Origin: Oikopleura dioica
Taxonomy: Eukaryota; Animalia; Chordata
Direction: 5' to 3'
Assembly: GCA_907165135.1 (NCBI GenBank)
Contig: OU015567.1
Location: forward strand, 1,302,001 to 1,366,000
DNA length: 64,000 bases
The notes below the pieces were generated by a model. That model was not told the DNA's origin. It was given only the letters and a program-made list of their open reading frames with translations, and made no database searches. Position numbers and translations under genes: made by a program. Shown one piece after another: positions 15,604-27,456 of this stretch. The stretch's first letter is position 1; each line of letters starts with the position of its first letter.

Positions 15604-17383
15604 AAAGTTAAGAATGGAATTTTAGAGCATTTTTTTCGTTCGATTTTCTCAAAAATGACCAAAAATTTGACAAAAACTTTTAAAAGAATGTCCCATCTAA
15701 ATCGCTCAAAATTTTATCAAAGAACCATCGATCGTCCTTTATTTCACTCCACATTTCGAAGACAAGAAATAATCTATTGAGAACATTAACAACCTTCTTA
15801 AGAATCATTATTAACAATTAAGAAGAATTTTTTGAAATTGAATTTTAACTTATGAAAATTCATTAATTGAAAATTATTGCGCAAAGGAAATCATAAAATT
15901 TTTAAAATGAATTTGTTAAAAGTGTCGCAAAAATAAAACCTGAAAATTGGAAATTATATTTACAAATTTAATAATAATTTTTTTTTAATTCAAAGAAATC
16001 GAAAGAATATTTTCGACCGCAGACCACAGATCATCAGACAGCAATTGACTTAAAATTTGGCAGTGTTGGTTAGACGAATATTTTTCTGAGACTCTTTTAG
16101 GTAACTTAATTTTGTGGATACTTTGACCATCTTAAGAGTTTTTGTTCTACACTTTTGCAAGGATAAATTAACAATTTTCGTGACATTTTCTTTGTCAGAA
16201 AATAATAGAAGAAGTAAAAGGGTTTTTTTTTAAATATCAGAATATTTTTTGAAAAGATCTCAAAGTTAAAACAATTTAATTGACCAAGAATGGCAATTTA
16301 TGTGGACATTTTAATGAAATTTGGGACAAAAATTTCCACAAATTGGAGAATTACTTTTACTTGCTTGATATGCATGCTGAGAGGTAGAAAAAAAAATATT
16401 TATTATAAACGTTTATTTTCCACAAAAATTTGTGAAAAACCGAGATTTCTCTGTTGAAACTTTAATAAATTCTTTTCGGAAAGAAGCCTCTTTCAGAAAC
16501 GCGTTCTCGCAACCCTAGTCTTCAATTTTCTACTTCAGTGCTTTACCAGTTTCCGAGCACAAAGTATATTAAGACCGTCTATGCAAAAAGAAAGGCCGGA
16601 TTCGAACCTCGAGCCAGGTTGTAGCATCCTTAATGCGACGCACTCGGAAACGGGTAGACTGATGCGAAAACTTCTTACACAGCTGATAACGTTATTAATA
16701 ATCTTGTAGACTTCTTATAATTTACTTTTCCCGAAATAAATAAAAAACAAGCAGCAATTTTTGTCAATATAAATTACACAAGGAAATACCGCGGTTGGCA
16801 TTTCTGACTGACTGATTTTTCAGTCAGTCAAATTCACGTTACAAATCTCCATGCTGTGGACATAGCAAATTTGTAACGTGCGCTTATTGGTCGACTGGTT
16901 TGACGGGGTTCCCACGGAGGGGTCCTCCAGCCTTGATATCTAGCCTTTACGAATAGGATACTTTTTGGGCAGTTTTTTGTCATGTGACATTCTATTTTAA
17001 AAATTTTTCAATCACGTGATCTCTCGGAGGACCCCTGGAGGACTTTTTCTACTGGAAGACATCATTTACTGGAAGACCGATGATTAAAATCATCCCTTAA
17101 ATTAATATTCATATTCGGTCTCTTCGATCACGTGGTCTCTCGGAGGACCTTCGGAGGACTTTTTCTACTGGAAGACCAATTTTACTGGAAGACCAATTAA
17201 AAAAATAAAATAATCGGGAAAATTGAAGGAATCTGATGAGCATATCAAGATGACAGTGATGATGGATTTTCTTATTTTTTTCATCCACCATTCCAACCGT
17301 CAATATCCACCGCCCACAGACAGCGGTGTGGTCAACCGATATGATCGACCAGATGTACAGAAATACTCTATGATAATCAGCTC

Positions 17384-17861
17384 TCATCGACTGAAAGCTC
17401 TGTGGTAATTATCATAGAGGAAGAGGCAGTTGAAGACCAATGGAGTTCCTAAATACATTTTATTTCATTTTTCAGTAAAAAAAAACATACCGAGAAGACT
17501 GACTTGTCTCGCATCAACAGAGACTAGCATCTCTTCCATCCTTCTTATTTTCTTGACCTTCGAACTTATCTTCGTGGTTGTTTCTTTGGTTTCTGAGCTG
17601 GAGAACGCGGAATCGACGAGGTGGCCGTTCCTAAAATTGAAAAAGTTATTTTTGGGAAGAAATGTCGAAATCATACCTGCCAGGACTTATCTCTCCGCCA
17701 TTATGCAGCCACAACCACAGCCCGCATACGCTTCTGATATGAGCCTCGCGCGTAGATCTCCAGCAGCAGAAAAGGGATACAGATAAAGAGAAACAGATGT
17801 TTGGGCAGTAGAAGAGCTGAAAAAGACGATCTGTCACAAGCATACTAGGAAGAGAAATCAT
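17384..17861 (-). CDS. Second, three-exon ORF (~129 aa) inside the transposon
   Basis: Canonical GTATG...TTTAG introns at 17631-17676 (46 nt) and 17449-17490 (42 nt) join three exons in one frame; Cys-rich hydrophobic N-terminus. Confidence 0.5.
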
Positions 17862-17870
17862 TGGGTTAGC

Positions 17871-18245
17871 AGGGCCAAACTCTCGATCTTGTTGCCATGT
17901 GTTTCTTAAATCATAATTATGTAAAATGACAGCAGATTGGCCCGAAACCGGGCAGCTCTCAGTGGCATCAGGCGGGACGAAGCTTCACAATTAAGTTATC
18001 AATTTTCGTACCGAAGCGCAGAAGTATGAAAAGCAAAAAGGGCCGCGAGTGAGATCCATGAGAACCATCGATCTACCCCTTTTTGCTTCAACAGACGACC
18101 TTGCTTTTTTTCAAATTGATAACTTAACTGCGACGCCAAGTACCGCTTAGTCCCATCGAGAGCCGCTCCGTTCTGGGCAAACCGGCTCTCATCTTACTTA
18201 TTATGATAAAAGAAACACATCGGAACAAGAGCAAGAGTTAGGCCC
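17871..18245. other. Long imperfect inverted repeat (foldback), ~135-bp arms, ~105-bp loop
   Basis: 17871-18005 aligns with the reverse complement of 18113-18245 (e.g. atgtgtttctt..atcataa, gc(a/g)gctctc, ttaagttatcaattt). Confidence 0.8.
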
Positions 18246-18563
18246 GGCCAATTCAATAATTTCTCCACCAAAAGATGCGAGACATAATTTCAAATTTGAA
18301 CTTATGGAATTTGGAAGTGGGACAAATAAGTGACGAAATAATAAATGGGCAGTGAAATTTAAATGATAAATAATTTAAAAAGACAATTTTGTAATGAAAT
18401 TATAAATGGGCAGTGAAATTTTTATTATACAGAAATAAAAATAAATTTTCAGAAATAAATTAATTCAAGTAATTGACAAATAACTGAATAGTCGAAATCT
18501 TCTTTTTCTTCTTTGAGGAATAAGGGAAAATGCTTTGAGAAAAAGAGCCAGAGGGAGGTTGAC

Positions 18564-20594
18564 TCAGGCTTGAGGATTCCGAACCGACAAAGAGCCACGG
18601 TTCGCCTTGTAGCCTTCTGTTGTTCCACCCTCTAAATGAACCACCTGTTTAGCCTTGTCAAGAAGTTTTTGACACATGTTATTGATTTTGGACTGGTCAA
18701 TCTGACTCCACACGAGATTTATGACTTCTCGCGCGTGCTCTAACGAGTCAAAATACAACTTCTTATTTCTCCCAAGCTCTTCACGAACTTTTGATTTCAA
18801 ATGTGCCCAAAGGCTGAAATCGAGGGGATTAAGGTCGGGGCTATGGGGTGGCCACTCATGCATTCTCTTCTCCCGATGTGCCTGTCCCTGTATTTCTCCG
18901 CACGCGACGCCGGTGATGCACCGATCTAACGAGAAATGGGCATCGAGGAACTCCAGACTACTTGCGGAAGTATGCGAGCGAGCTCCGTCTTGTACGTAGA
19001 CGCGACCGACGAGCTCGCTGGTTCCATCCTCACGGATATGTATGTGTCCATGGGCCGCGAGGTCCTCGTACCAAGGCTCGAGACAGATCTTCTGGTACCC
19101 AAGACTATTCTCTTTAATAGACTTGAGTTTCCCATTTGCTTGCTCCTCAACAAAAACGCGTAATGAAAGCTTTATATTGTGTCCGATACAACAAGCGATC
19201 ATTATTTTTGCGTTAAACTTTTTGCTGAAGCTCAGCAAATGTTGAGGAGGAGCCTCGTTGTCTTTTACCCACCAGCCGAGATTTCGGCCAAATTTCTCTT
19301 CACGCATCGAAATTGAGCATTCATCCGTATGCAACAACTGTTGCAGGAAATCGGGTGTTCTCTCTACCTCTTCCAGCAGCCATTTGCAGAAGGCCAGCCG
19401 CTTCTGCTTCGCTTCTTTCGAGAGTTCGGGCTTGGCTTTTCCAAAACGCTCAAATGAGTAGCCATCTTTCGCAAGAAGCCTGAATACTCGCGAATAGTTG
19501 CTCCAGCCTGGCATTCCGAGTTCGGCTAGTGCTTTCCTCAGATTATTACTCTGAGCGTAATGGGTTGGAGCCTGTTCGCGCATTTTGTCAACAACAAGCT
19601 GAACTTGCTGTTTCTCCTCATCGGTAAGAGGCTTATCATCTGGAATAGGTTCTTTTGGTCGAATAAAATTTGAAATAGCAAAAGGATTTTTTCTTATCCA
19701 TTGCTTTTCCTGATTTTTGTCAAGGGAAAATGCTTTATAGCCGTTGTTCATTGCATCGACCAAGAGAGTGTACCTTTCGATGAATAAGCCTAATATAGCC
19801 GCGTTGAACTTTTTCTCGAATGTCACCGGTCCCAGAACAAAGTACTGGCTGAGATTTGTGCATAAGATTTGGAGATAGATGTACCCAAGATCACTGGATG
19901 CAAACTGTTTCCATGTTCGTGGAGATCTGATTACTGGAAGCTCCTCGATTCGATCGACATTGATCAGCTTCACCTTATCCCGTACTGATTTTGTAATGTG
20001 TATAGGGAATCGGAAATTGAAGCTTTCCATGATTAAATCGAGGAGCCCTGCGAATTCTTCATCGTGGAGAAGATTCTCGTGGCCTACTACTACCGTTCCT
20101 CGCGGAATGAGTGGCCGATCGAGCTGATCGATCGCTTCATTCTGAGTGGCTTGTGGTTGTGATTGTAAGGCACTTTTTGCAAGCCGAACCATGCTATCTG
20201 GAGGTGTCTGTGGCGAGAGGCCGGGAACTAATTCAAGATCATAATGATCTTGATTCAGTTGGATTGTTGAGGTGGCTGGTATGGGGGTCGAGGTTGGGAC
20301 TTTTGCTGGAGCAGTGCTCGTCTTCTGCTTTTTAGGGGGAGAATGATCTTCGTCATAGCATGTCTCCTGTGAGTGCTTTTCGACAGCTTTCCCATTAGGG
20401 AAATCTTTTGAAAAAGATTTCTGAATGAATCGGGTTTGTTTGGCCTTAGGGGAAAAAATACTGTATGTTATTTTATAACCCATGTCCTGCTGTAGGTCGA
20501 TAATCTTCTTGAATGCTGTCTCTGCTTCTTTTAAGAGTTGAGCGATCATTCGGTGCTTTTGGACTCGGTTGAAAGAACTGCACATTCGTGACAT
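18564..20594 (-). CDS. 676-aa DDD transposase with a long N-terminal extension
   Basis: HTH region (..RVFRLLAKDGY..KPELSKEAKQKRLAFCKW), LHTDE, YVQDGARSH, WPPHSPDLNPLDFSLW. Confidence 0.95.
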   Translation of the reverse strand: MSRMCSSFNRVQKHRMIAQLLKEAETAFKKIIDLQQDMGYKITYSIFSPKAKQTRFIQKSFSKDFPNGKAVEKHSQETCYDEDHSPPKKQKTSTAPAKVPTSTPIPATSTIQLNQDHYDLELVPGLSPQTPPDSMVRLAKSALQSQPQATQNEAIDQLDRPLIPRGTVVVGHENLLHDEEFAGLLDLIMESFNFRFPIHITKSVRDKVKLINVDRIEELPVIRSPRTWKQFASSDLGYIYLQILCTNLSQYFVLGPVTFEKKFNAAILGLFIERYTLLVDAMNNGYKAFSLDKNQEKQWIRKNPFAISNFIRPKEPIPDDKPLTDEEKQQVQLVVDKMREQAPTHYAQSNNLRKALAELGMPGWSNYSRVFRLLAKDGYSFERFGKAKPELSKEAKQKRLAFCKWLLEEVERTPDFLQQLLHTDECSISMREEKFGRNLGWWVKDNEAPPQHLLSFSKKFNAKIMIACCIGHNIKLSLRVFVEEQANGKLKSIKENSLGYQKICLEPWYEDLAAHGHIHIREDGTSELVGRVYVQDGARSHTSASSLEFLDAHFSLDRCITGVACGEIQGQAHREKRMHEWPPHSPDLNPLDFSLWAHLKSKVREELGRNKKLYFDSLEHAREVINLVWSQIDQSKINNMCQKLLDKAKQVVHLEGGTTEGYKANRGSLSVRNPQA

Positions 20595-23027
20595 TGTACC
20601 TCGACTTCTCTCTATTCGTCTTTATGTGGATTATATAAATTTATTACTATAACTCATTTTTAGGCCCCGTGAGCTACCCAAAAATCGAAAAAAAAATTAA
20701 AATTTTTATCAAAGTTCTTCCAGTAAAATATGTTCTTCCACCAGAAAAAGTCCTCCAGGGGTCCTCCGAGGGTCACATGACATAATGAAAACCGAAAACC
20801 TCCCCCTTAAATTTTTATCATCGGTCTTCCAGTTTTGGTTCTTCTTCCACCTAAAGAGTCCTCCGGTTGGGTCCTCCATGAAGTCACGTGGAAAATAAAA
20901 TTTTAAAAATTATTCTAATATAACCTAACTATTGTTATTTCTAATGATAATAATAATAATAAAATAAAATAAGGGTGTCACTTTGCTAACTTATCTAATC
21001 CGCTCCTGAATTTCTCTGAAAAGTGAAATTTCAGGGCGGACTTAGGTAGACGTGCTCAAAAATCTAGAAGAGAAGTTAACTTTTGTAAGTTAACTTTCGA
21101 AAGTTAACTTTCGAGAACATAAGAATTGGTTTTTCTAGACATTCTCGCTCTTCCTGGTTGCGCGATTCTTCCACCAGGAGGAGGTCCTCCACTAGAGAGG
21201 TGTTATATAATTTTTACTGGCAAAAGCAAATCAGTCAGTCAGATATGCCAATCGCGGTAAATAACTTGCTTTCGTTTAAAATTTTCATTTTTAATCACAC
21301 GTTTATTGATTGAATGATTCCCTTGTTAATCCAAAAAAATGTCTGTAGAATTGATAGCTGTTATTTTAATTTATTGTGTTATTTTTCAATCAGACAAATC
21401 TTTATCACAGGAACTCTTGATTCTTCTGGGTAAGAAATTATCGTCAACGCTTTTAATTCTCTTTGAAAGATAAATAATTCTTTGTAAAATGCAAGATAGC
21501 AACAAAACTTGATGATTCTGAAGAAAAATGCAAAGCAAGGCTCGTTTGCACCGAGCACAAACCTTGCTTGCGAGCGCCCGCTCATTATCCATCATGCGGA
21601 TAATTTTTATTTTCTTTCTATAAAATACTCAGATTCGAGTAAAGAATCAAAAAAGAAAACAAAAAAAAAACGCTGTTTAAATTCTGCAAGCACAAAGAGC
21701 ATCATGAAAGTAAGTACATATCGCTTCTTTTTTTATTGGTATCTTTATGTTTCTTTTTTGAAGGTTTTTCAATCATCAAAATTTTTATAATTATTGTTAT
21801 TTATTTTTTTGACTTTTCTTCTAAAAAAATCAAAGAAATTGACAGGTTTCTTAAAAAATGGGCCAATCTCCATTCAAAAAACTCTTTCTTACTATCTATA
21901 ATTTCCCAAAATTTTGCCACGAATATCTCTGAATTTTTCAATGATTACTGAGTTTTAATGGGAAAATTCGATAGATCTGTCGTAAATTATAAATAAAAGA
22001 GGGGTTTTTATAAATTTCTCAACCGTAGAGCGGCTTAATTTTTGCTAAAAGCGCCCATTTTCGCGAAGTTTTCATGAATAACCAGTCTTATAATTCGAGA
22101 AAAAAATTTTTTACTTTCTCTTATTTAATTTATTTATTATATTTCTCTAATATCATGCAATAATTGAGACTAAGCAAATTTTTTTGGAAATTAAATTTTG
22201 AAGAAATGAATCATGAAACGATATATTTATATCAAGTTTATTTCAAAACGATTTATTTTTTTAAATTAATTTTCGAAATGGGACAAAATGGATTTTTAAA
22301 TTTTTCGCTATCCATAACTGGATGACCAATAAGGATGCCGAATAAAGCTCTTCGGCCAATCAAAGCCCTCATCGATTAAATCACTTTTGAAATAATTTCT
22401 TCCAAAATAACTCGTCTCCAAATAGCTTCATCCTCATTAATTGTGTCATAACTATCCTTTTACACTTATCGTTTCTCTACTTAGTTTTTCAAATTCGAAT
22501 TTACCAAAAATTAATTTTAGCCGAAAATATAGGTTTTTGGCAAGCGTTGGCGCCGACACTCGACCAAATCGACATTGTCGGGTATCGGTCGGGCTTTGCT
22601 CGGGTCGATTGTCGGAAACCTACGCTTTTCTCTCGTTCGAAAATGACTGTCACTCAAATTCTGCCTTCTGAATCAGCGGATCTAGCCGATTTGATTTGTT
22701 ACCAGTCTATTTAAGGACCCCTCCATTTAGTTGGAAACACTTTTACAAACAGTGATTTTAAACTGATCCCCTTAAGATTTCCGAAAAATTTTCGGCTCTT
22801 TGTATAGCTTGATAGTTGGTCTAGGGCATCAAAAGTAAGAACACGCTCGTGCATTTCTTAAGGGTATCGCAACAATACGTTTAAGTTTCAAAAAATGATT
22901 ATTGATTTCTAACGTTAAATTATGAGAACTACAAAATAAATCAAATATTCCATAATGAAAAATAAATTATGTTTATTTATAAGTAGAACCATGCTTTTCA
23001 GTTTTGAAACTACCATCAATATGTTAC

Positions 23028-24067: not shown

Positions 24068-27000
24068 TTAATCAAGCCTTCTTTTCGAAAGACGAGTCGA
24101 GCGAACTGGAGTTTTTGAAACCTCGATTTTTGGCTTCTTTGCTCTTTTTTCTTCTTTGATTTTCTGACGTTCGATTTTGATCTTCTTTATTTCGTCCCTT
24201 TTCTTTAGAATTTCCTCCCTTTTCTTGCGAAATCGTTCTTTCAGCGTCTTTCGAACCTCCAGAGTAGTTTTGACTTCGTTCGAGTTGTCGATTCTATCCA
24301 AAAGCTCGTCCCGCTGTTTCTTTTTCATTCTCCTCAGGTAGTTGCCCAGCTTGTTAACTTGAACAACAGTTTGGTCGGCAATGTTTGCGAGCGCGGAACC
24401 AGTGCTCGTTTGTTCCTTGTACTTCAGGGTGGCAAAGACACTCTCGCAAAAGCGATTAGACGTCTCATATTTACCAGAAAGTCGAAGTGATTTCATCTGG
24501 TTGTAATCTTTCTGCAACTTTTTCTTTGCTTCTGTAAGGCACTGTCGAATCGTCTCATTCAGGTCGTCCCGAAGTTTAGCATCCCTTGGCATCTCTTTGA
24601 ATTCTCGAAGTTTCCTAAAGATAAAATTGAATCTTTACAAACTGATAAATTGGGGTACCCAAAAATTTATTTTTTTTTATAATTGATTAATTGGGATACC
24701 CAAAAATTAGTTTTTTTTATAAATTGATTAATTGGGGTACCCAAATATTATTTTTTTATAAATTGATTAATTGGGGTACCCAATAAATTGATCTTTAAAA
24801 TAATGGGATACCCAAAATTGTTTAATAAAAAAAACTTACAGGAAATATTCTGAGTCTTCGTAATTTTCCAGAACTCCATCAAAAAGATCGTCGTAAGGCT
24901 GTTTGGATTCGAGAATTTTCTCCAAAGCATCGAGGCAGGATTTCATTTGAATGCGGACATCTTCGATCGTGCCTTCTTCATTCTCTGATGCCCTGAGAAT
25001 AAGACCTGAGTACGAAGCCCAAATCAGAGGTGTCAGAGATGTGCTCAGAATAGCTAGTTGTTTATCTTGGAGGAGTGGGAGAAGTTCCTTTGCTCGTTTG
25101 CGGTCGGAGTATTTGCTGATGGTCTTGACAGTTGCCTCCCAGTAAAGCAAAAGGCCCTCGGCATTCTTCTTGGAAGAGCCGATTCGTGAACCCATGTCGG
25201 TGCAGTAGGCTTTCTTTGTAGATTTGTCGCCAAGTTCTACACGCACTTCGTCGAGCCTGAAAAAGAATTAATTGGGGTACCCAAAAAAGAATTTGAAAAA
25301 TTGATTGGGTTACCCAATTGGGCTACCCAAAAATGAAAACTTACTCATTCTTGAGATCTTCGCGATGATGGCCGCTGATTTTGCTTGAGCCAAAAAAGAA
25401 TTTTCAAGCAAGTGAAAATATCATTCGCTAAAGCAGAAAGTCCTTGCCGGCCGTATCGATCGATGTTCCCAGCCGTATGCAGAGCACACCAGATCCACTG
25501 CACTGGAATCTCGGAGTTCCTCTTCTTGTCGATGAATTCAATTATCTGCATGTTTGCAGCTTCTTGCGCACGGCAGGTGTCTGTGAGAATTGAGTCGGTT
25601 TTCTTCCAGATCTCATCAGAAAATGACAGTGTGTCGATAGAAAGAGTGACGGCTGTGAAGATTTCTTCAGCTGTTCCACCGAAAAGCTCAACGATCATGA
25701 ACAGCAGCTTTTCCCTTTCTTCGTTGATGAATACGACGTTCATGCATTGACGATTTGATTTTGAGGTTGTCTGAAAAAAGTATTTATTGGGGTACCCAAA
25801 TATTACAATTAAAAAAAATTATTGGGCTCCCCATAATTGGGGTACCCAAAATTTCAAAGAATAACTTACCCCGTCAGTAGCGAGTGTCAGGCGCTCGGCG
25901 TTCTTAACAAATTCTTCAAGCTGCACGAAAGTTGCTAGGAGAAGGTTTGGACGCAATTTGTAGAGGGTTGATTTGGCGACAGGTCGTCGAGTTTCGCCTT
26001 CAACTGGTTTCGAAAAGATTCTGTGCTCTTTGAATTTGTTCGTGCTGTTGAAATGAACCGAAGGAACGGACTGCGATGCAAGCTCGATCAAATGATTGAA
26101 ACGAGTCGTTGGTGGAAGTCTCGGGTTGTTTTTTCCTCTTCCAGAGACCGGTGTTGATTTTGATTTCACCAAATAGTAGTCTCTGTCTTTTCTAAAGTCG
26201 TCATCATCAATTTCTTCGCTGTAGTCGATCGTTTGTCGCTTTCTTTTCTTTCCAACAGCTGAGCATGAGGCGACATTTTCTTGTGAAGGCGTTTCTAAAG
26301 AAAAATTCAGTAAAAATAATCCGTTATTATTGGGGTCCCCAATTTGGGGACCCCAAAAAAAAACTTTTAAATGATTCGATATTATTGGGGTACCCAATTT
26401 GGGGACCCCAAAAAAAAACTATAAAATGATCCGATATTATTGGGGTACCCAATTTGGGAGCCCCAAAAAAAACTTTTAAATGATTCGATATTATTGGGGT
26501 ACCCAATTTGGGGACCCCAAAAAAAACTATAAAATGATCCGATATTATTGGGGTACCCAATTTGGGAGCCCCAAAAATACAATTGTCATGATTCTTTTTA
26601 ATTTTCTTTATTCTTACCTGTGAAATTCAGAATTGTTTCAGCCATCATTTCAGACGAATCTGGAGTTGGAATCGTTTGAGGATTCTCAAGAATCTGATCT
26701 GGCAACATTCCCTTCACTAAAAGCTTTGTTAGATTTTTTGGGATACCCAAAAATTTCTTTTATAAAAACAAGAGGCACCTTATTCAGGTGCCTTTTTATC
26801 TTGCTCGACTATTTAATTAATTCACTTGCCTGGCGATGTCTGAACTGCGCAATCATTAAGCAACATCGGGAGCTCTTCGTCTGAATCCAGGCCTTCTTCT
26901 GCCAGACATTCAAGACCGACTGTAGGATTCTCCTCGTCGAACCTTGTTTCTCCCTTTCGAAAAAGTCTCTCGGATTTGTGATGGAATGTCTGCATTTTCG

Positions 27001-27456
27001 GCTTTCTGGAAAAAAAAAGAGAGTAATCCAATTTCACTTTTTCTCGAAATCTTCTGAGGATTTTGCATGACTTCGTACCATAGGTACGATTCTCTTTGCA
27101 TTTGTTTATCTCTGCTTGACTTGCGATTTCATTCTCAACAAGTTTTTTTTCGACATCAACGAGTGTCAAAATCATTATTTACTTGATATGAATGAGATTT
27201 ATCCCGGAAATCCCTTTGTTTTTGCATCGAACCACTTGGTTTTGTCACCTTCTGCAGAAAGGTTCGAACCTAACATGGGGCGCAATGTCAACAGAGTTCG
27301 AGTGCATGGAAAGGCACTAGTTCCGGGCGCGCTCGTCGCGCGATTCCCTGCCGCGCCGTCACTTCCAGTCAAAAAACGGACAATTTCGCGAGGTTCTTGT
27401 TGCAGCATAGCCCCAAGATTTCGACAGATGCTTGAGAGATATCTGTTTCTGGACAT
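24068..27456 (-). CDS. Multi-exon DDE/CxxH transposase, one apparent frameshift, 5' exons unresolved
   Basis: LTLATDG (D1), ILTDTC (D2), WCALH (CxxH), TSNRFCESVFATLK (E); introns 24615-24839, 25257-25344, 25771-25869, 26295-26617, 26717-26829 (GC-AG). Confidence 0.8.
26326..26575. repeat. Intronic minisatellite, ~54-55-bp unit, about 4.5 copies
   Basis: Unit ttattggggtacccaatttgggg(a)ccccaaaaaaaac...; alternating variants cttttaaatgattcg / ctataaaatgatccg. Confidence 0.9.

Follow-up and report, generated by a model that had tools for sequence, protein, structure and literature searches.

The 64,000-nt stretch of Oikopleura dioica contig OU015567.1 analysed here (the window; all coordinates count from its position 1) contains a transposon of 4,469 bp at 16789-21257, whose minus strand carries an intact open reading frame (ORF) of 676 amino acids (aa). 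A preliminary description of this DNA had read the ORF as a Tc1/mariner transposase that has captured a MADS-box or NRF1-like domain at its N-terminus. We consider it likely that the element is an autonomous cut-and-paste transposon that belongs to the IS630-Tc1-mariner superfamily and was active recently, that the ORF encodes its transposase, and that this enzyme bears a conserved N-terminal module with no demonstrable relationship to MADS-box or NRF1 proteins.

Boundaries, ends and copies of the element

The transposon is bounded by terminal inverted repeats (TIRs) of 30 nt, with a TA dinucleotide directly outside either end. There are 2 mismatches between the TIRs of the two ends, and the two TIRs are the only matches to the 30-nt sequence in the window, where 0 are expected by chance. 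Each end also contains two subterminal repeat units of ~110 nt each, which lie 209-420 bp from the left tip and 352-558 bp from the right tip. The features that define the ends are as follows:

16787-16788, no strand: left TA target-site duplication (read from the sequence; the second copy, L006, is also TA-bounded)
16789-16818, plus strand: left TIR, 30 nt, beginning CCGCGG (the inverted pair is 32 nt including the TA and 94% complementary)
17007-17206, plus strand: left subterminal direct repeats, two ~84-nt units at 17007-17090 and 17123-17206 (repeat search and motif positions)
20700-20908, minus strand: right subterminal direct repeats, a pair of units in inverse orientation to those on the left (repeat search and motif positions)
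21228-21257, minus strand: right TIR (inverted-repeat search and match count in the window)
21258-21259, no strand: right TA target-site duplication (read from the sequence, and copy L006)

Each of the left subterminal units contains the sequence CACGTG, two copies of GGAGGAC and two copies of CTGGAAGA, the right units likewise contain CACGTG, GGAGGAC twice and CTGGAAGA, and the repeats built from these three motifs are candidate extra binding sites for the transposase.

A second copy of the element, 98.3% identical, is located at locus L006 (public record OU015568.1, from the O. dioica OKI2018_I69 assembly). Its likeness to the window is restricted to positions 16786-21262; it has the same ends and a TA on both sides, and its flanks are unrelated. 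Because L006 has unrelated flanks and a TA of its own, it fixes the boundaries of the 4,469-bp element and shows that transposition occurred with TA duplication, and a plain assembly duplication is rejected on the same two observations. TA duplication is a hallmark of Tc1/mariner elements, and together with the TIRs and the catalytic triad of the encoded protein (see below) it makes the transposon a member of the IS630-Tc1-mariner superfamily. At least two copies, ~98% identical, are thus present at separate sites, and the full 2,031-nt ORF is open in each. The copies differ at 9 of these 2,031 nt (6 synonymous and 3 non-synonymous changes), as compared to a total of ~68 differences and gaps in the remaining ~2.5 kb of the element (a value obtained by subtraction from 98.3% over 4,508 columns), which indicates that the coding sequence has been kept. 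Since both copies, at 98% identity, retain an open ORF and have perfect ends flanked by TA, present-day activity is possible.

The uneven distribution of these differences bears on a second explanation, in which the ORF is a domesticated, immobile host gene derived from a transposase, and the extension serves a new cellular function. In its favor, the copies differ ~6-fold less in the ORF than elsewhere in the element, with changes that are mostly synonymous, and homologues are expressed in marine metatranscriptomes. However, the TIRs, the TA duplications and the subterminal repeats are retained and match in the two copies, which lie at unrelated sites, the full DDD triad is present, and the homologues on two other contigs (L002 and L003, described below) are frameshifted, as is typical of decaying transposon copies; domestication therefore strikes us as extremely improbable.

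A DD55D transposase of unusual length

The ORF and the segments into which its product can be divided are listed below, from the N-terminus to the C-terminus:

18564-20594, minus strand: transposase ORF, 676 aa, single exon (ORF read; intact over the same 2031 nt in L006)
20409-20594, minus strand: N-terminal module, aa 1-62 (AlphaFold2 (AF2) helix; homology to the N-termini of homologues P0003 and L003)
20079-20408, minus strand: Pro/Ser/Thr/Gln-rich low-complexity linker, aa 63-172, with a PPKKQK motif (ORF read, alignment and AF2)
19632-20078, minus strand: conserved helical region, aa 173-321 (35-50% identity to P0003; hhalign and look-alikes)
19443-19631, minus strand: putative second (RED-like) helix-turn-helix (HTH), aa 322-384 (HTH_Tnp_Tc3_2, E 0.026; hhalign)
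18567-19442, minus strand: catalytic DDE/D domain, aa 385-676 (Pfam DDE_3 and invariant alignment columns)

The preliminary description had reported an intact ORF of this length and quoted its N-terminus, and we recovered both; the interval that it singled out, 20427-20594, corresponds to codons 1-56. As it also implied, the product is about twice as long as is usual for a Tc1/mariner-type transposase. Among database proteins the closest is one of 661 aa annotated in O. dioica OKI2018_I69, whose model begins at M16 of the ORF. The HTH and DDD core that had been assigned to the protein are present. Profiles recognize them weakly: Pfam DDE_3 is matched with an E of 7e-5 in one scan and 2.8e-5 in another (24.4 bits in the latter, under the curated cut-off of 28.6), HTH_Tnp_Tc3_2 is matched (E 0.026-0.05, also under its curated cut-off), and the region of the SPDLNP motif matches the Sleeping Beauty transposase SB100X (E 5e-4). 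The triad is formed by D423 (19326-19328), D536 (18987-18989) and D592 (18819-18821), all of which occupy invariant columns in an alignment with eight transposases, DD37D and DD40-41D enzymes among them. Searches with the full-length protein and with its core returned only family members and distant classical transposases, and the nearest proteins outside the family are ordinary transposases of 346-369 aa that share 24-27% identity with it and are of the DD37D or DD40-41D type. The protein is a very divergent Tc1/mariner transposase.

Following convention, Tc1/mariner transposases are classed largely by the spacing between the second and third catalytic residues. This spacing is 55 residues (DD55D) in both the window protein and its homologue P0002, and the core is enlarged by several insertions as compared to its closest relatives, the DD37D and DD40-41D transposases. 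A spacing of 55 matches none of the families listed to date (DD34E, DD34D, DD35E, DD36E, DD37D, DD37E, DD39D, DD41D and DD82E), and in the transposon literature searched we found neither the term DD55D nor a described family with such an architecture or spacing, in keeping with the preliminary description, whose author knew of no family like this one. New Tc1/mariner families are described regularly. By its spacing the DD55D lineage falls outside the named families, and its length and predicted N-terminal architecture are unlike those of any of them.

The part of the protein that precedes the catalytic domain was compared to the N-termini of distant relatives using hhalign, which aligned aa 322-384 with a P of 7e-5 and a probability of 63%; confidence is low upstream of this RED part. 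Searches for look-alikes of aa 172-385, by language model and by structure, gave HTH transposase domains in every case. From approximately residue 243 the protein probably contains a divergent first (PAI-like) HTH that is interrupted by an insertion, and aa 173-242 form an extra conserved segment. The domain of ~150 residues that had been recorded as unknown is accordingly given a more specific reading, as it most likely comprises a divergent paired-like DNA-binding domain, starting at ~aa 243, and ~70 extra residues. Approximately 240 residues (aa 1-242) are therefore extra, located ahead of the predicted paired-like domain. Within them, the linker is conserved neither in length nor in sequence, as it has 55 inserted and 18 deleted residues relative to P0003. 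Its AF2 confidence (predicted local distance difference test, pLDDT) of ~24-33, with no predicted secondary structure, suggests that it is probably disordered, and its PPKKQK motif is a possible nuclear localization signal.

The N-terminal module and the MADS-box question

The first 62 residues contain an amphipathic helix (aa 10-38) followed by the motif D-M-G-Y-x-I-T-x-x-I-x-S-P and a basic K-x-K-Q-x-R stretch. An AF2 model of aa 1-75 shows the helix with pLDDT values of 80-89, then an extended segment, and has no beta hairpin. An exhaustive phmmer search with aa 1-330 over 1.84 billion representative proteins returned three family members and one further match, the 1296-aa repeat protein P0005, which was set aside as spurious since it matches only the low-complexity linker. 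No donor gene for aa 1-330 was found among these representatives, which leaves the proposed capture of a transcription factor module without support.

Homologues of the module are present in two other sequences of marine origin. One, L002, is a contig from a marine metatranscriptome that codes for a homologue of full length, with a single frameshift, over query residues 9-675, and in tblastn searches query residues 9-367 form a single colinear alignment with this contig; the other, L003, is an NCBI assembly contig that encodes another, also frameshifted, homologue. The N-termini of P0003 and L003 are colinear with that of the window protein, with shuffle z scores of 5.6 (window protein versus P0003), 6.1 (window protein versus L003) and 15 (P0003 versus L003). 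Because it has homologues in two other marine sequences, the module is a true coding part of the gene. The phmmer, tblastn, alignment and shuffle results together bear out the earlier view that the N-terminal addition is real and translated, and show that it is conserved in the family. The sister family occurs in marine metatranscriptomes, and is therefore transcribed in nature, as well as in seawater metagenomes; part of it is also contained in a DNA run labelled Oikopleura dioica. A metagenome scan with the family alignment recovered only an already known contig and one fragment. The end motifs of the window element do not occur upstream of the homologues in L002 and L003, whose leaders bear different repeats. 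At L002 positions 520-700, just upstream of the start codon, there are ~15 tandem copies of a unit of ~11 nt (ACAAATGTCYAC). This array may be the equivalent of the binding-site repeats predicted in the window element.

The start of the module has a competing explanation, in which translation begins at M16 or further downstream and the apparent module is a fortuitously open 5' leader. The public annotation places the start at M16, no RNA reads could be placed on the region, and conservation and pLDDT are both low over residues 1-9. Nevertheless, no start codon lies between the upstream stop and M1, P0003 also begins with Met-Ser at the aligned position and is similar from residue 6-8 onward, and codons 1-62 of the two O. 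dioica copies differ by two synonymous changes only. We regard a downstream start as improbable, and initiation at M16 would even so leave the strand motif complete and the helix largely intact.

The preliminary description had aligned this N-terminus without gaps to the MADS-box consensus and had noted that it would also suit NRF1/EWG. The resemblance exists as a string of letters, as an ungapped 30-mer shares 7 identities with the MEF2 MADS domain and has a BLOSUM62 score of 18; it does not exceed chance, as 49 of 2000 shuffles of aa 1-62 reached this score against that single target, which had been chosen beforehand. Smith-Waterman alignment of aa 1-62 to MEF2 gave a score of 23, as compared to 22.9 +/- 4.5 for shuffled sequences (P 0.47), and did not reproduce the register of the earlier alignment. 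The suggested equivalence of the MSR start and R10 with MGR and R10 of MADS domains did not hold up, as these residues are not conserved in the homologue and the public model starts at M16. Pfam scans of the complete protein, of aa 1-70 on their own and of aa 1-72 of the homologue returned no SRF-TF or Nrf1 match (E <= 10), and a profile of the module searched against the PDB (E <= 10) found 0 of the 18 MADS chain sequences. We also constructed a MADS hidden Markov model (HMM) from 120 MEF2-type MADS domains that were fetched with a PDB-verified query, 116 of which entered the model. With filters off and the search space set to one, it gave 0.6 bits (P 0.034) for the window protein and 3.8 bits (P 0.0034) for P0003. 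The profile comparison of the N-terminus with SRF-TF and Nrf1 that had been proposed as a check thus yielded no Pfam match, and a comparison by hhalign between the MADS alignment and the module, represented by three sequences, returned a P of 0.0096 and a probability of 4.3% over 54 columns, in the register of the earlier alignment. In this register only R15, K22, K29-K30 and L34 coincide with the MADS arm and the helix alpha-I motif, which comprises R-Q-V-T-F-x-K-R, Gly and K-K-A-x-E-L-S-x-L-C-D, and K29-K30 is replaced by S-Q in P0003. The MADS basic arm, the R-Q-V-T-F-x-K-R motif and the conserved Gly are absent from the module. The CArG box CC(A/T)6GG occurs 5 times in the 64-kb window (5.2 expected) and is absent from 16789-21257, which agrees with the earlier failure to spot a perfect CArG box in the element ends. 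Three other matches were rejected: DUF728 and DUF3042 for aa 1-72 of P0003 (E 0.019 and 0.1), which are not common to the window protein, and the ZAP1 zinc finger for the module profile (E 0.75), as the module has no Cys/His ligands.

The module was also compared by structure. Among the 99 models nearest to the ESMFold model of aa 1-70 there is an SRF-TF cluster, with template modeling (TM) scores of 0.56/0.55 as compared to 0.44-0.54 for unrelated families. In a Foldseek search of the PDB with the AF2 model, 11 of the 13 chains listed, and the first of them, are MADS proteins, with E values of 4-9 and a probability of ~0.1. No MADS protein was among the matches when the AF2 model was used to search the AlphaFold DB Swiss-Prot set, and VIA-align did not reproduce the Foldseek ranking of MADS chains. 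ESM Atlas feature matches for aa 1-70 and for aa 1-72 of P0003 (0.46-0.56, including BEN-domain clusters) were discarded as they are far under a meaningful level.

Taken as a whole, these data allow the idea to be weighed that the N-terminal ~60 residues constitute a MADS-type (SRF-TF) alpha-beta-beta core, captured or inherited, that has diverged greatly and serves in dimerization or DNA binding. The weak signals are all in the register of the earlier alignment, the hhalign P value extends over 54 columns, the ESMFold and Foldseek rankings point to the same family, and, as we read it, the hydrophobic periodicity of the helix and strand fits helix alpha-I and strand beta-1 of MADS domains. However, no signal is significant once the choice of family is counted, as 3.8 bits corresponds to an E of ~84 over Pfam's 24,736 models, and the low hhalign and Foldseek probabilities tell the same story. 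Nor are the signals independent, since a handful of shared residues underlies them all and the MADS chains are themselves mutually homologous. Furthermore, the Swiss-Prot fold search and the AF2 model, which has no beta hairpin, run counter to the idea, as do the blank Pfam and PDB profile searches, the pairwise score at the shuffle mean, the missing arm, RQVTF-x-KR motif and Gly, and the element's lack of a CArG box; the FKK, DL, G and IFS residues on which the earlier alignment was built are not conserved in P0003. A MADS-type core of this kind is in our view unlikely. A narrower version, in which aa 1-60 are a stripped-down MADS-type alpha/beta dimerization core that has no DNA-contacting arm and pairs subunits across the multi-site ends, is a long shot; if it is true, a MADS-fold module would be described in a transposase for the first time.

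Our reading is that the resemblance is consistent but at chance level, with nominal P values of 0.003-0.07 for one family that was picked after the sequence had been viewed, and that it reflects the succession of an amphipathic helix and a strand in which hydrophobic residues alternate. MADS or NRF1 homology of the aa 1-56 module is not supported by the statistical tests, in that Pfam, the PDB profile search, the MADS HMM and hhalign all withhold support from the identification originally offered. The module is best described as a family-specific domain that has no relatives detectable with these searches. A negative lesson is that a persuasive alignment by eye of 26-30 residues to a famous domain proved to be at chance level.

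The interpretation of the ORF as the transposase of an autonomous element with a conserved N-terminal module has several points against it. The weak signals that point to MADS proteins have not been accounted for completely, the homologue is only 27% identical, and the public gene model begins at M16 instead of M1. The AF2 model of aa 1-330, computed from four sequences, has a mean pLDDT of 35 and is unusable, so the architecture proposed for aa 173-321 is drawn from weak profile and language-model signals. Two copies that are 98% identical indicate past mobility, not present mobility. In four O. dioica RNA runs of 2026, 0 reads mapped to 16700-21300 at 90% likeness; as these runs may represent another lineage, this result does not bear on expression. 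Finally, the function of the N-terminal module is purely inferred. With these reservations, a mechanism can be outlined in which the paired-like domain would bind the TIRs and the subterminal repeat units, and the disordered linker would contribute the nuclear localization signal PPKKQK. The helix-strand module could mediate protein-protein contacts, either in oligomerization or in synapsis of two long multi-site ends, or it could recruit a host factor.

Relation to known transposons and further features of the element

Transposases with spacings similar to those of the best relatives of the window protein have been named maT (DD37D) and Visitor/rosa (DD41D) (bioRxiv 10.1101/2022.10.13.512200). 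The relatives in question are P0127 and P0131 (37 residues) and P0133, P0134 and P0128 (40-41 residues), which are of the maT/Visitor kind by spacing. The window element has in common with these families the TA duplication, TIRs and D as the last residue of the triad, as well as a near-identical W-P-P-H-S-P-D-L-N-P-L-D-[YF]-x-x-W motif, Q-D-G-A-R-S-H, a RED-type HTH and an RP-rich linker. However, its protein is only 24-27% identical to theirs, owes its spacing of 55 to an insertion of ~15 residues, has further core insertions and a C-terminal tail, and is 676 aa long (with ~240 extra N-terminal residues) as compared to 346-369 aa. The element itself also differs, as it is 4.5 kb long and has long structured ends and a possible second gene. 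Sailor (DD82E) is a precedent for a group of its own within the superfamily that is marked by a large insertion separating the second catalytic residue from the third (PMC8533490). It differs from the window protein in that E is its third residue and its spacing is 82.

Sleeping Beauty and Tc3-type elements with inverted repeat-direct repeat (IR-DR) ends resemble the window element in having repeated candidate binding sites in long ends. Sleeping Beauty has several such sites in its long ends, and more than one transposase is bound per end. It differs in that it is a DD34E enzyme of 340 aa, and the window repeats, located 210-560 bp from the tips, bear no likeness to its sites. MADS-box domains (SRF-TF, PF00319) share with the module an N-terminal long amphipathic helix that is followed by an alternating-hydrophobic strand, with 7 of 30 residues identical, whereas the module has no DNA-contacting arm or motifs, no CArG target, and no significance in profile, pairwise or structure-only comparisons. 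Further precedents are transposase fusions such as SETMAR, in which a mariner-type transposase is joined to an unrelated N-terminal part, a SET domain, in a single-copy host gene. In contrast, the window element has been mobile, and the part added to its transposase belongs to no recognizable family.

The element appears to represent an undescribed Tc1/mariner lineage (DD55D, 676 aa, 4.5 kb), seen so far only in O. dioica and marine samples, that would form a separate branch in a superfamily ordered largely by spacing. Its orphan module and ~240 extra residues offer a tractable case for studying the role of an accessory domain in a cut-and-paste enzyme whose ends have multiple predicted sites. 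As O. dioica is a chordate model with a compact genome, an active endogenous transposon would be worth considering as a tool for transgenesis or for insertional mutagenesis.

Two additional features are located between the transposase gene and the left end:

17852-18265, no strand: fold-back (inverted-repeat) segment of 414 nt within the element (two nested inverted-repeat pairs, 73-82% complementary; also present in L006)
17384-17861, minus strand: possible second element gene, three exons (frame kept by splicing; 128-aa product)

The fold-back segment could be a nested miniature inverted-repeat transposable element (MITE) or a structured part of the element itself. Two tandem 61-nt units that are 77% alike are present at 18321-18442, which is 120-240 nt downstream of the transposase stop codon. 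The three-exon ORF lies downstream of the transposase on the same strand and is absent from the public annotation. It has two GT..AG mini-introns, of 46 nt (17631-17676) and 42 nt (17449-17490), and its predicted 128-aa product is identical in copy L006; it is a possible second gene of the element. Rfam gave no match over 16000-22000. Each TIR contains an outward-facing ATG, whose A is 13 nt from the tip (window 16789-16801 and 21245-21257). At L006, an annotated neighboring gene of 967 aa (L006 2273-5305, minus strand) begins at the TIR ATG (L006 5291-5305), and since its start ATG lies inside the TIR, the gene model has probably been truncated by, or fused to, the insertion. In the window, a run of ORFs (174, 136, 132, 192 and 117 aa) is found on the minus strand at 24068-27200, 3 kb from the element.

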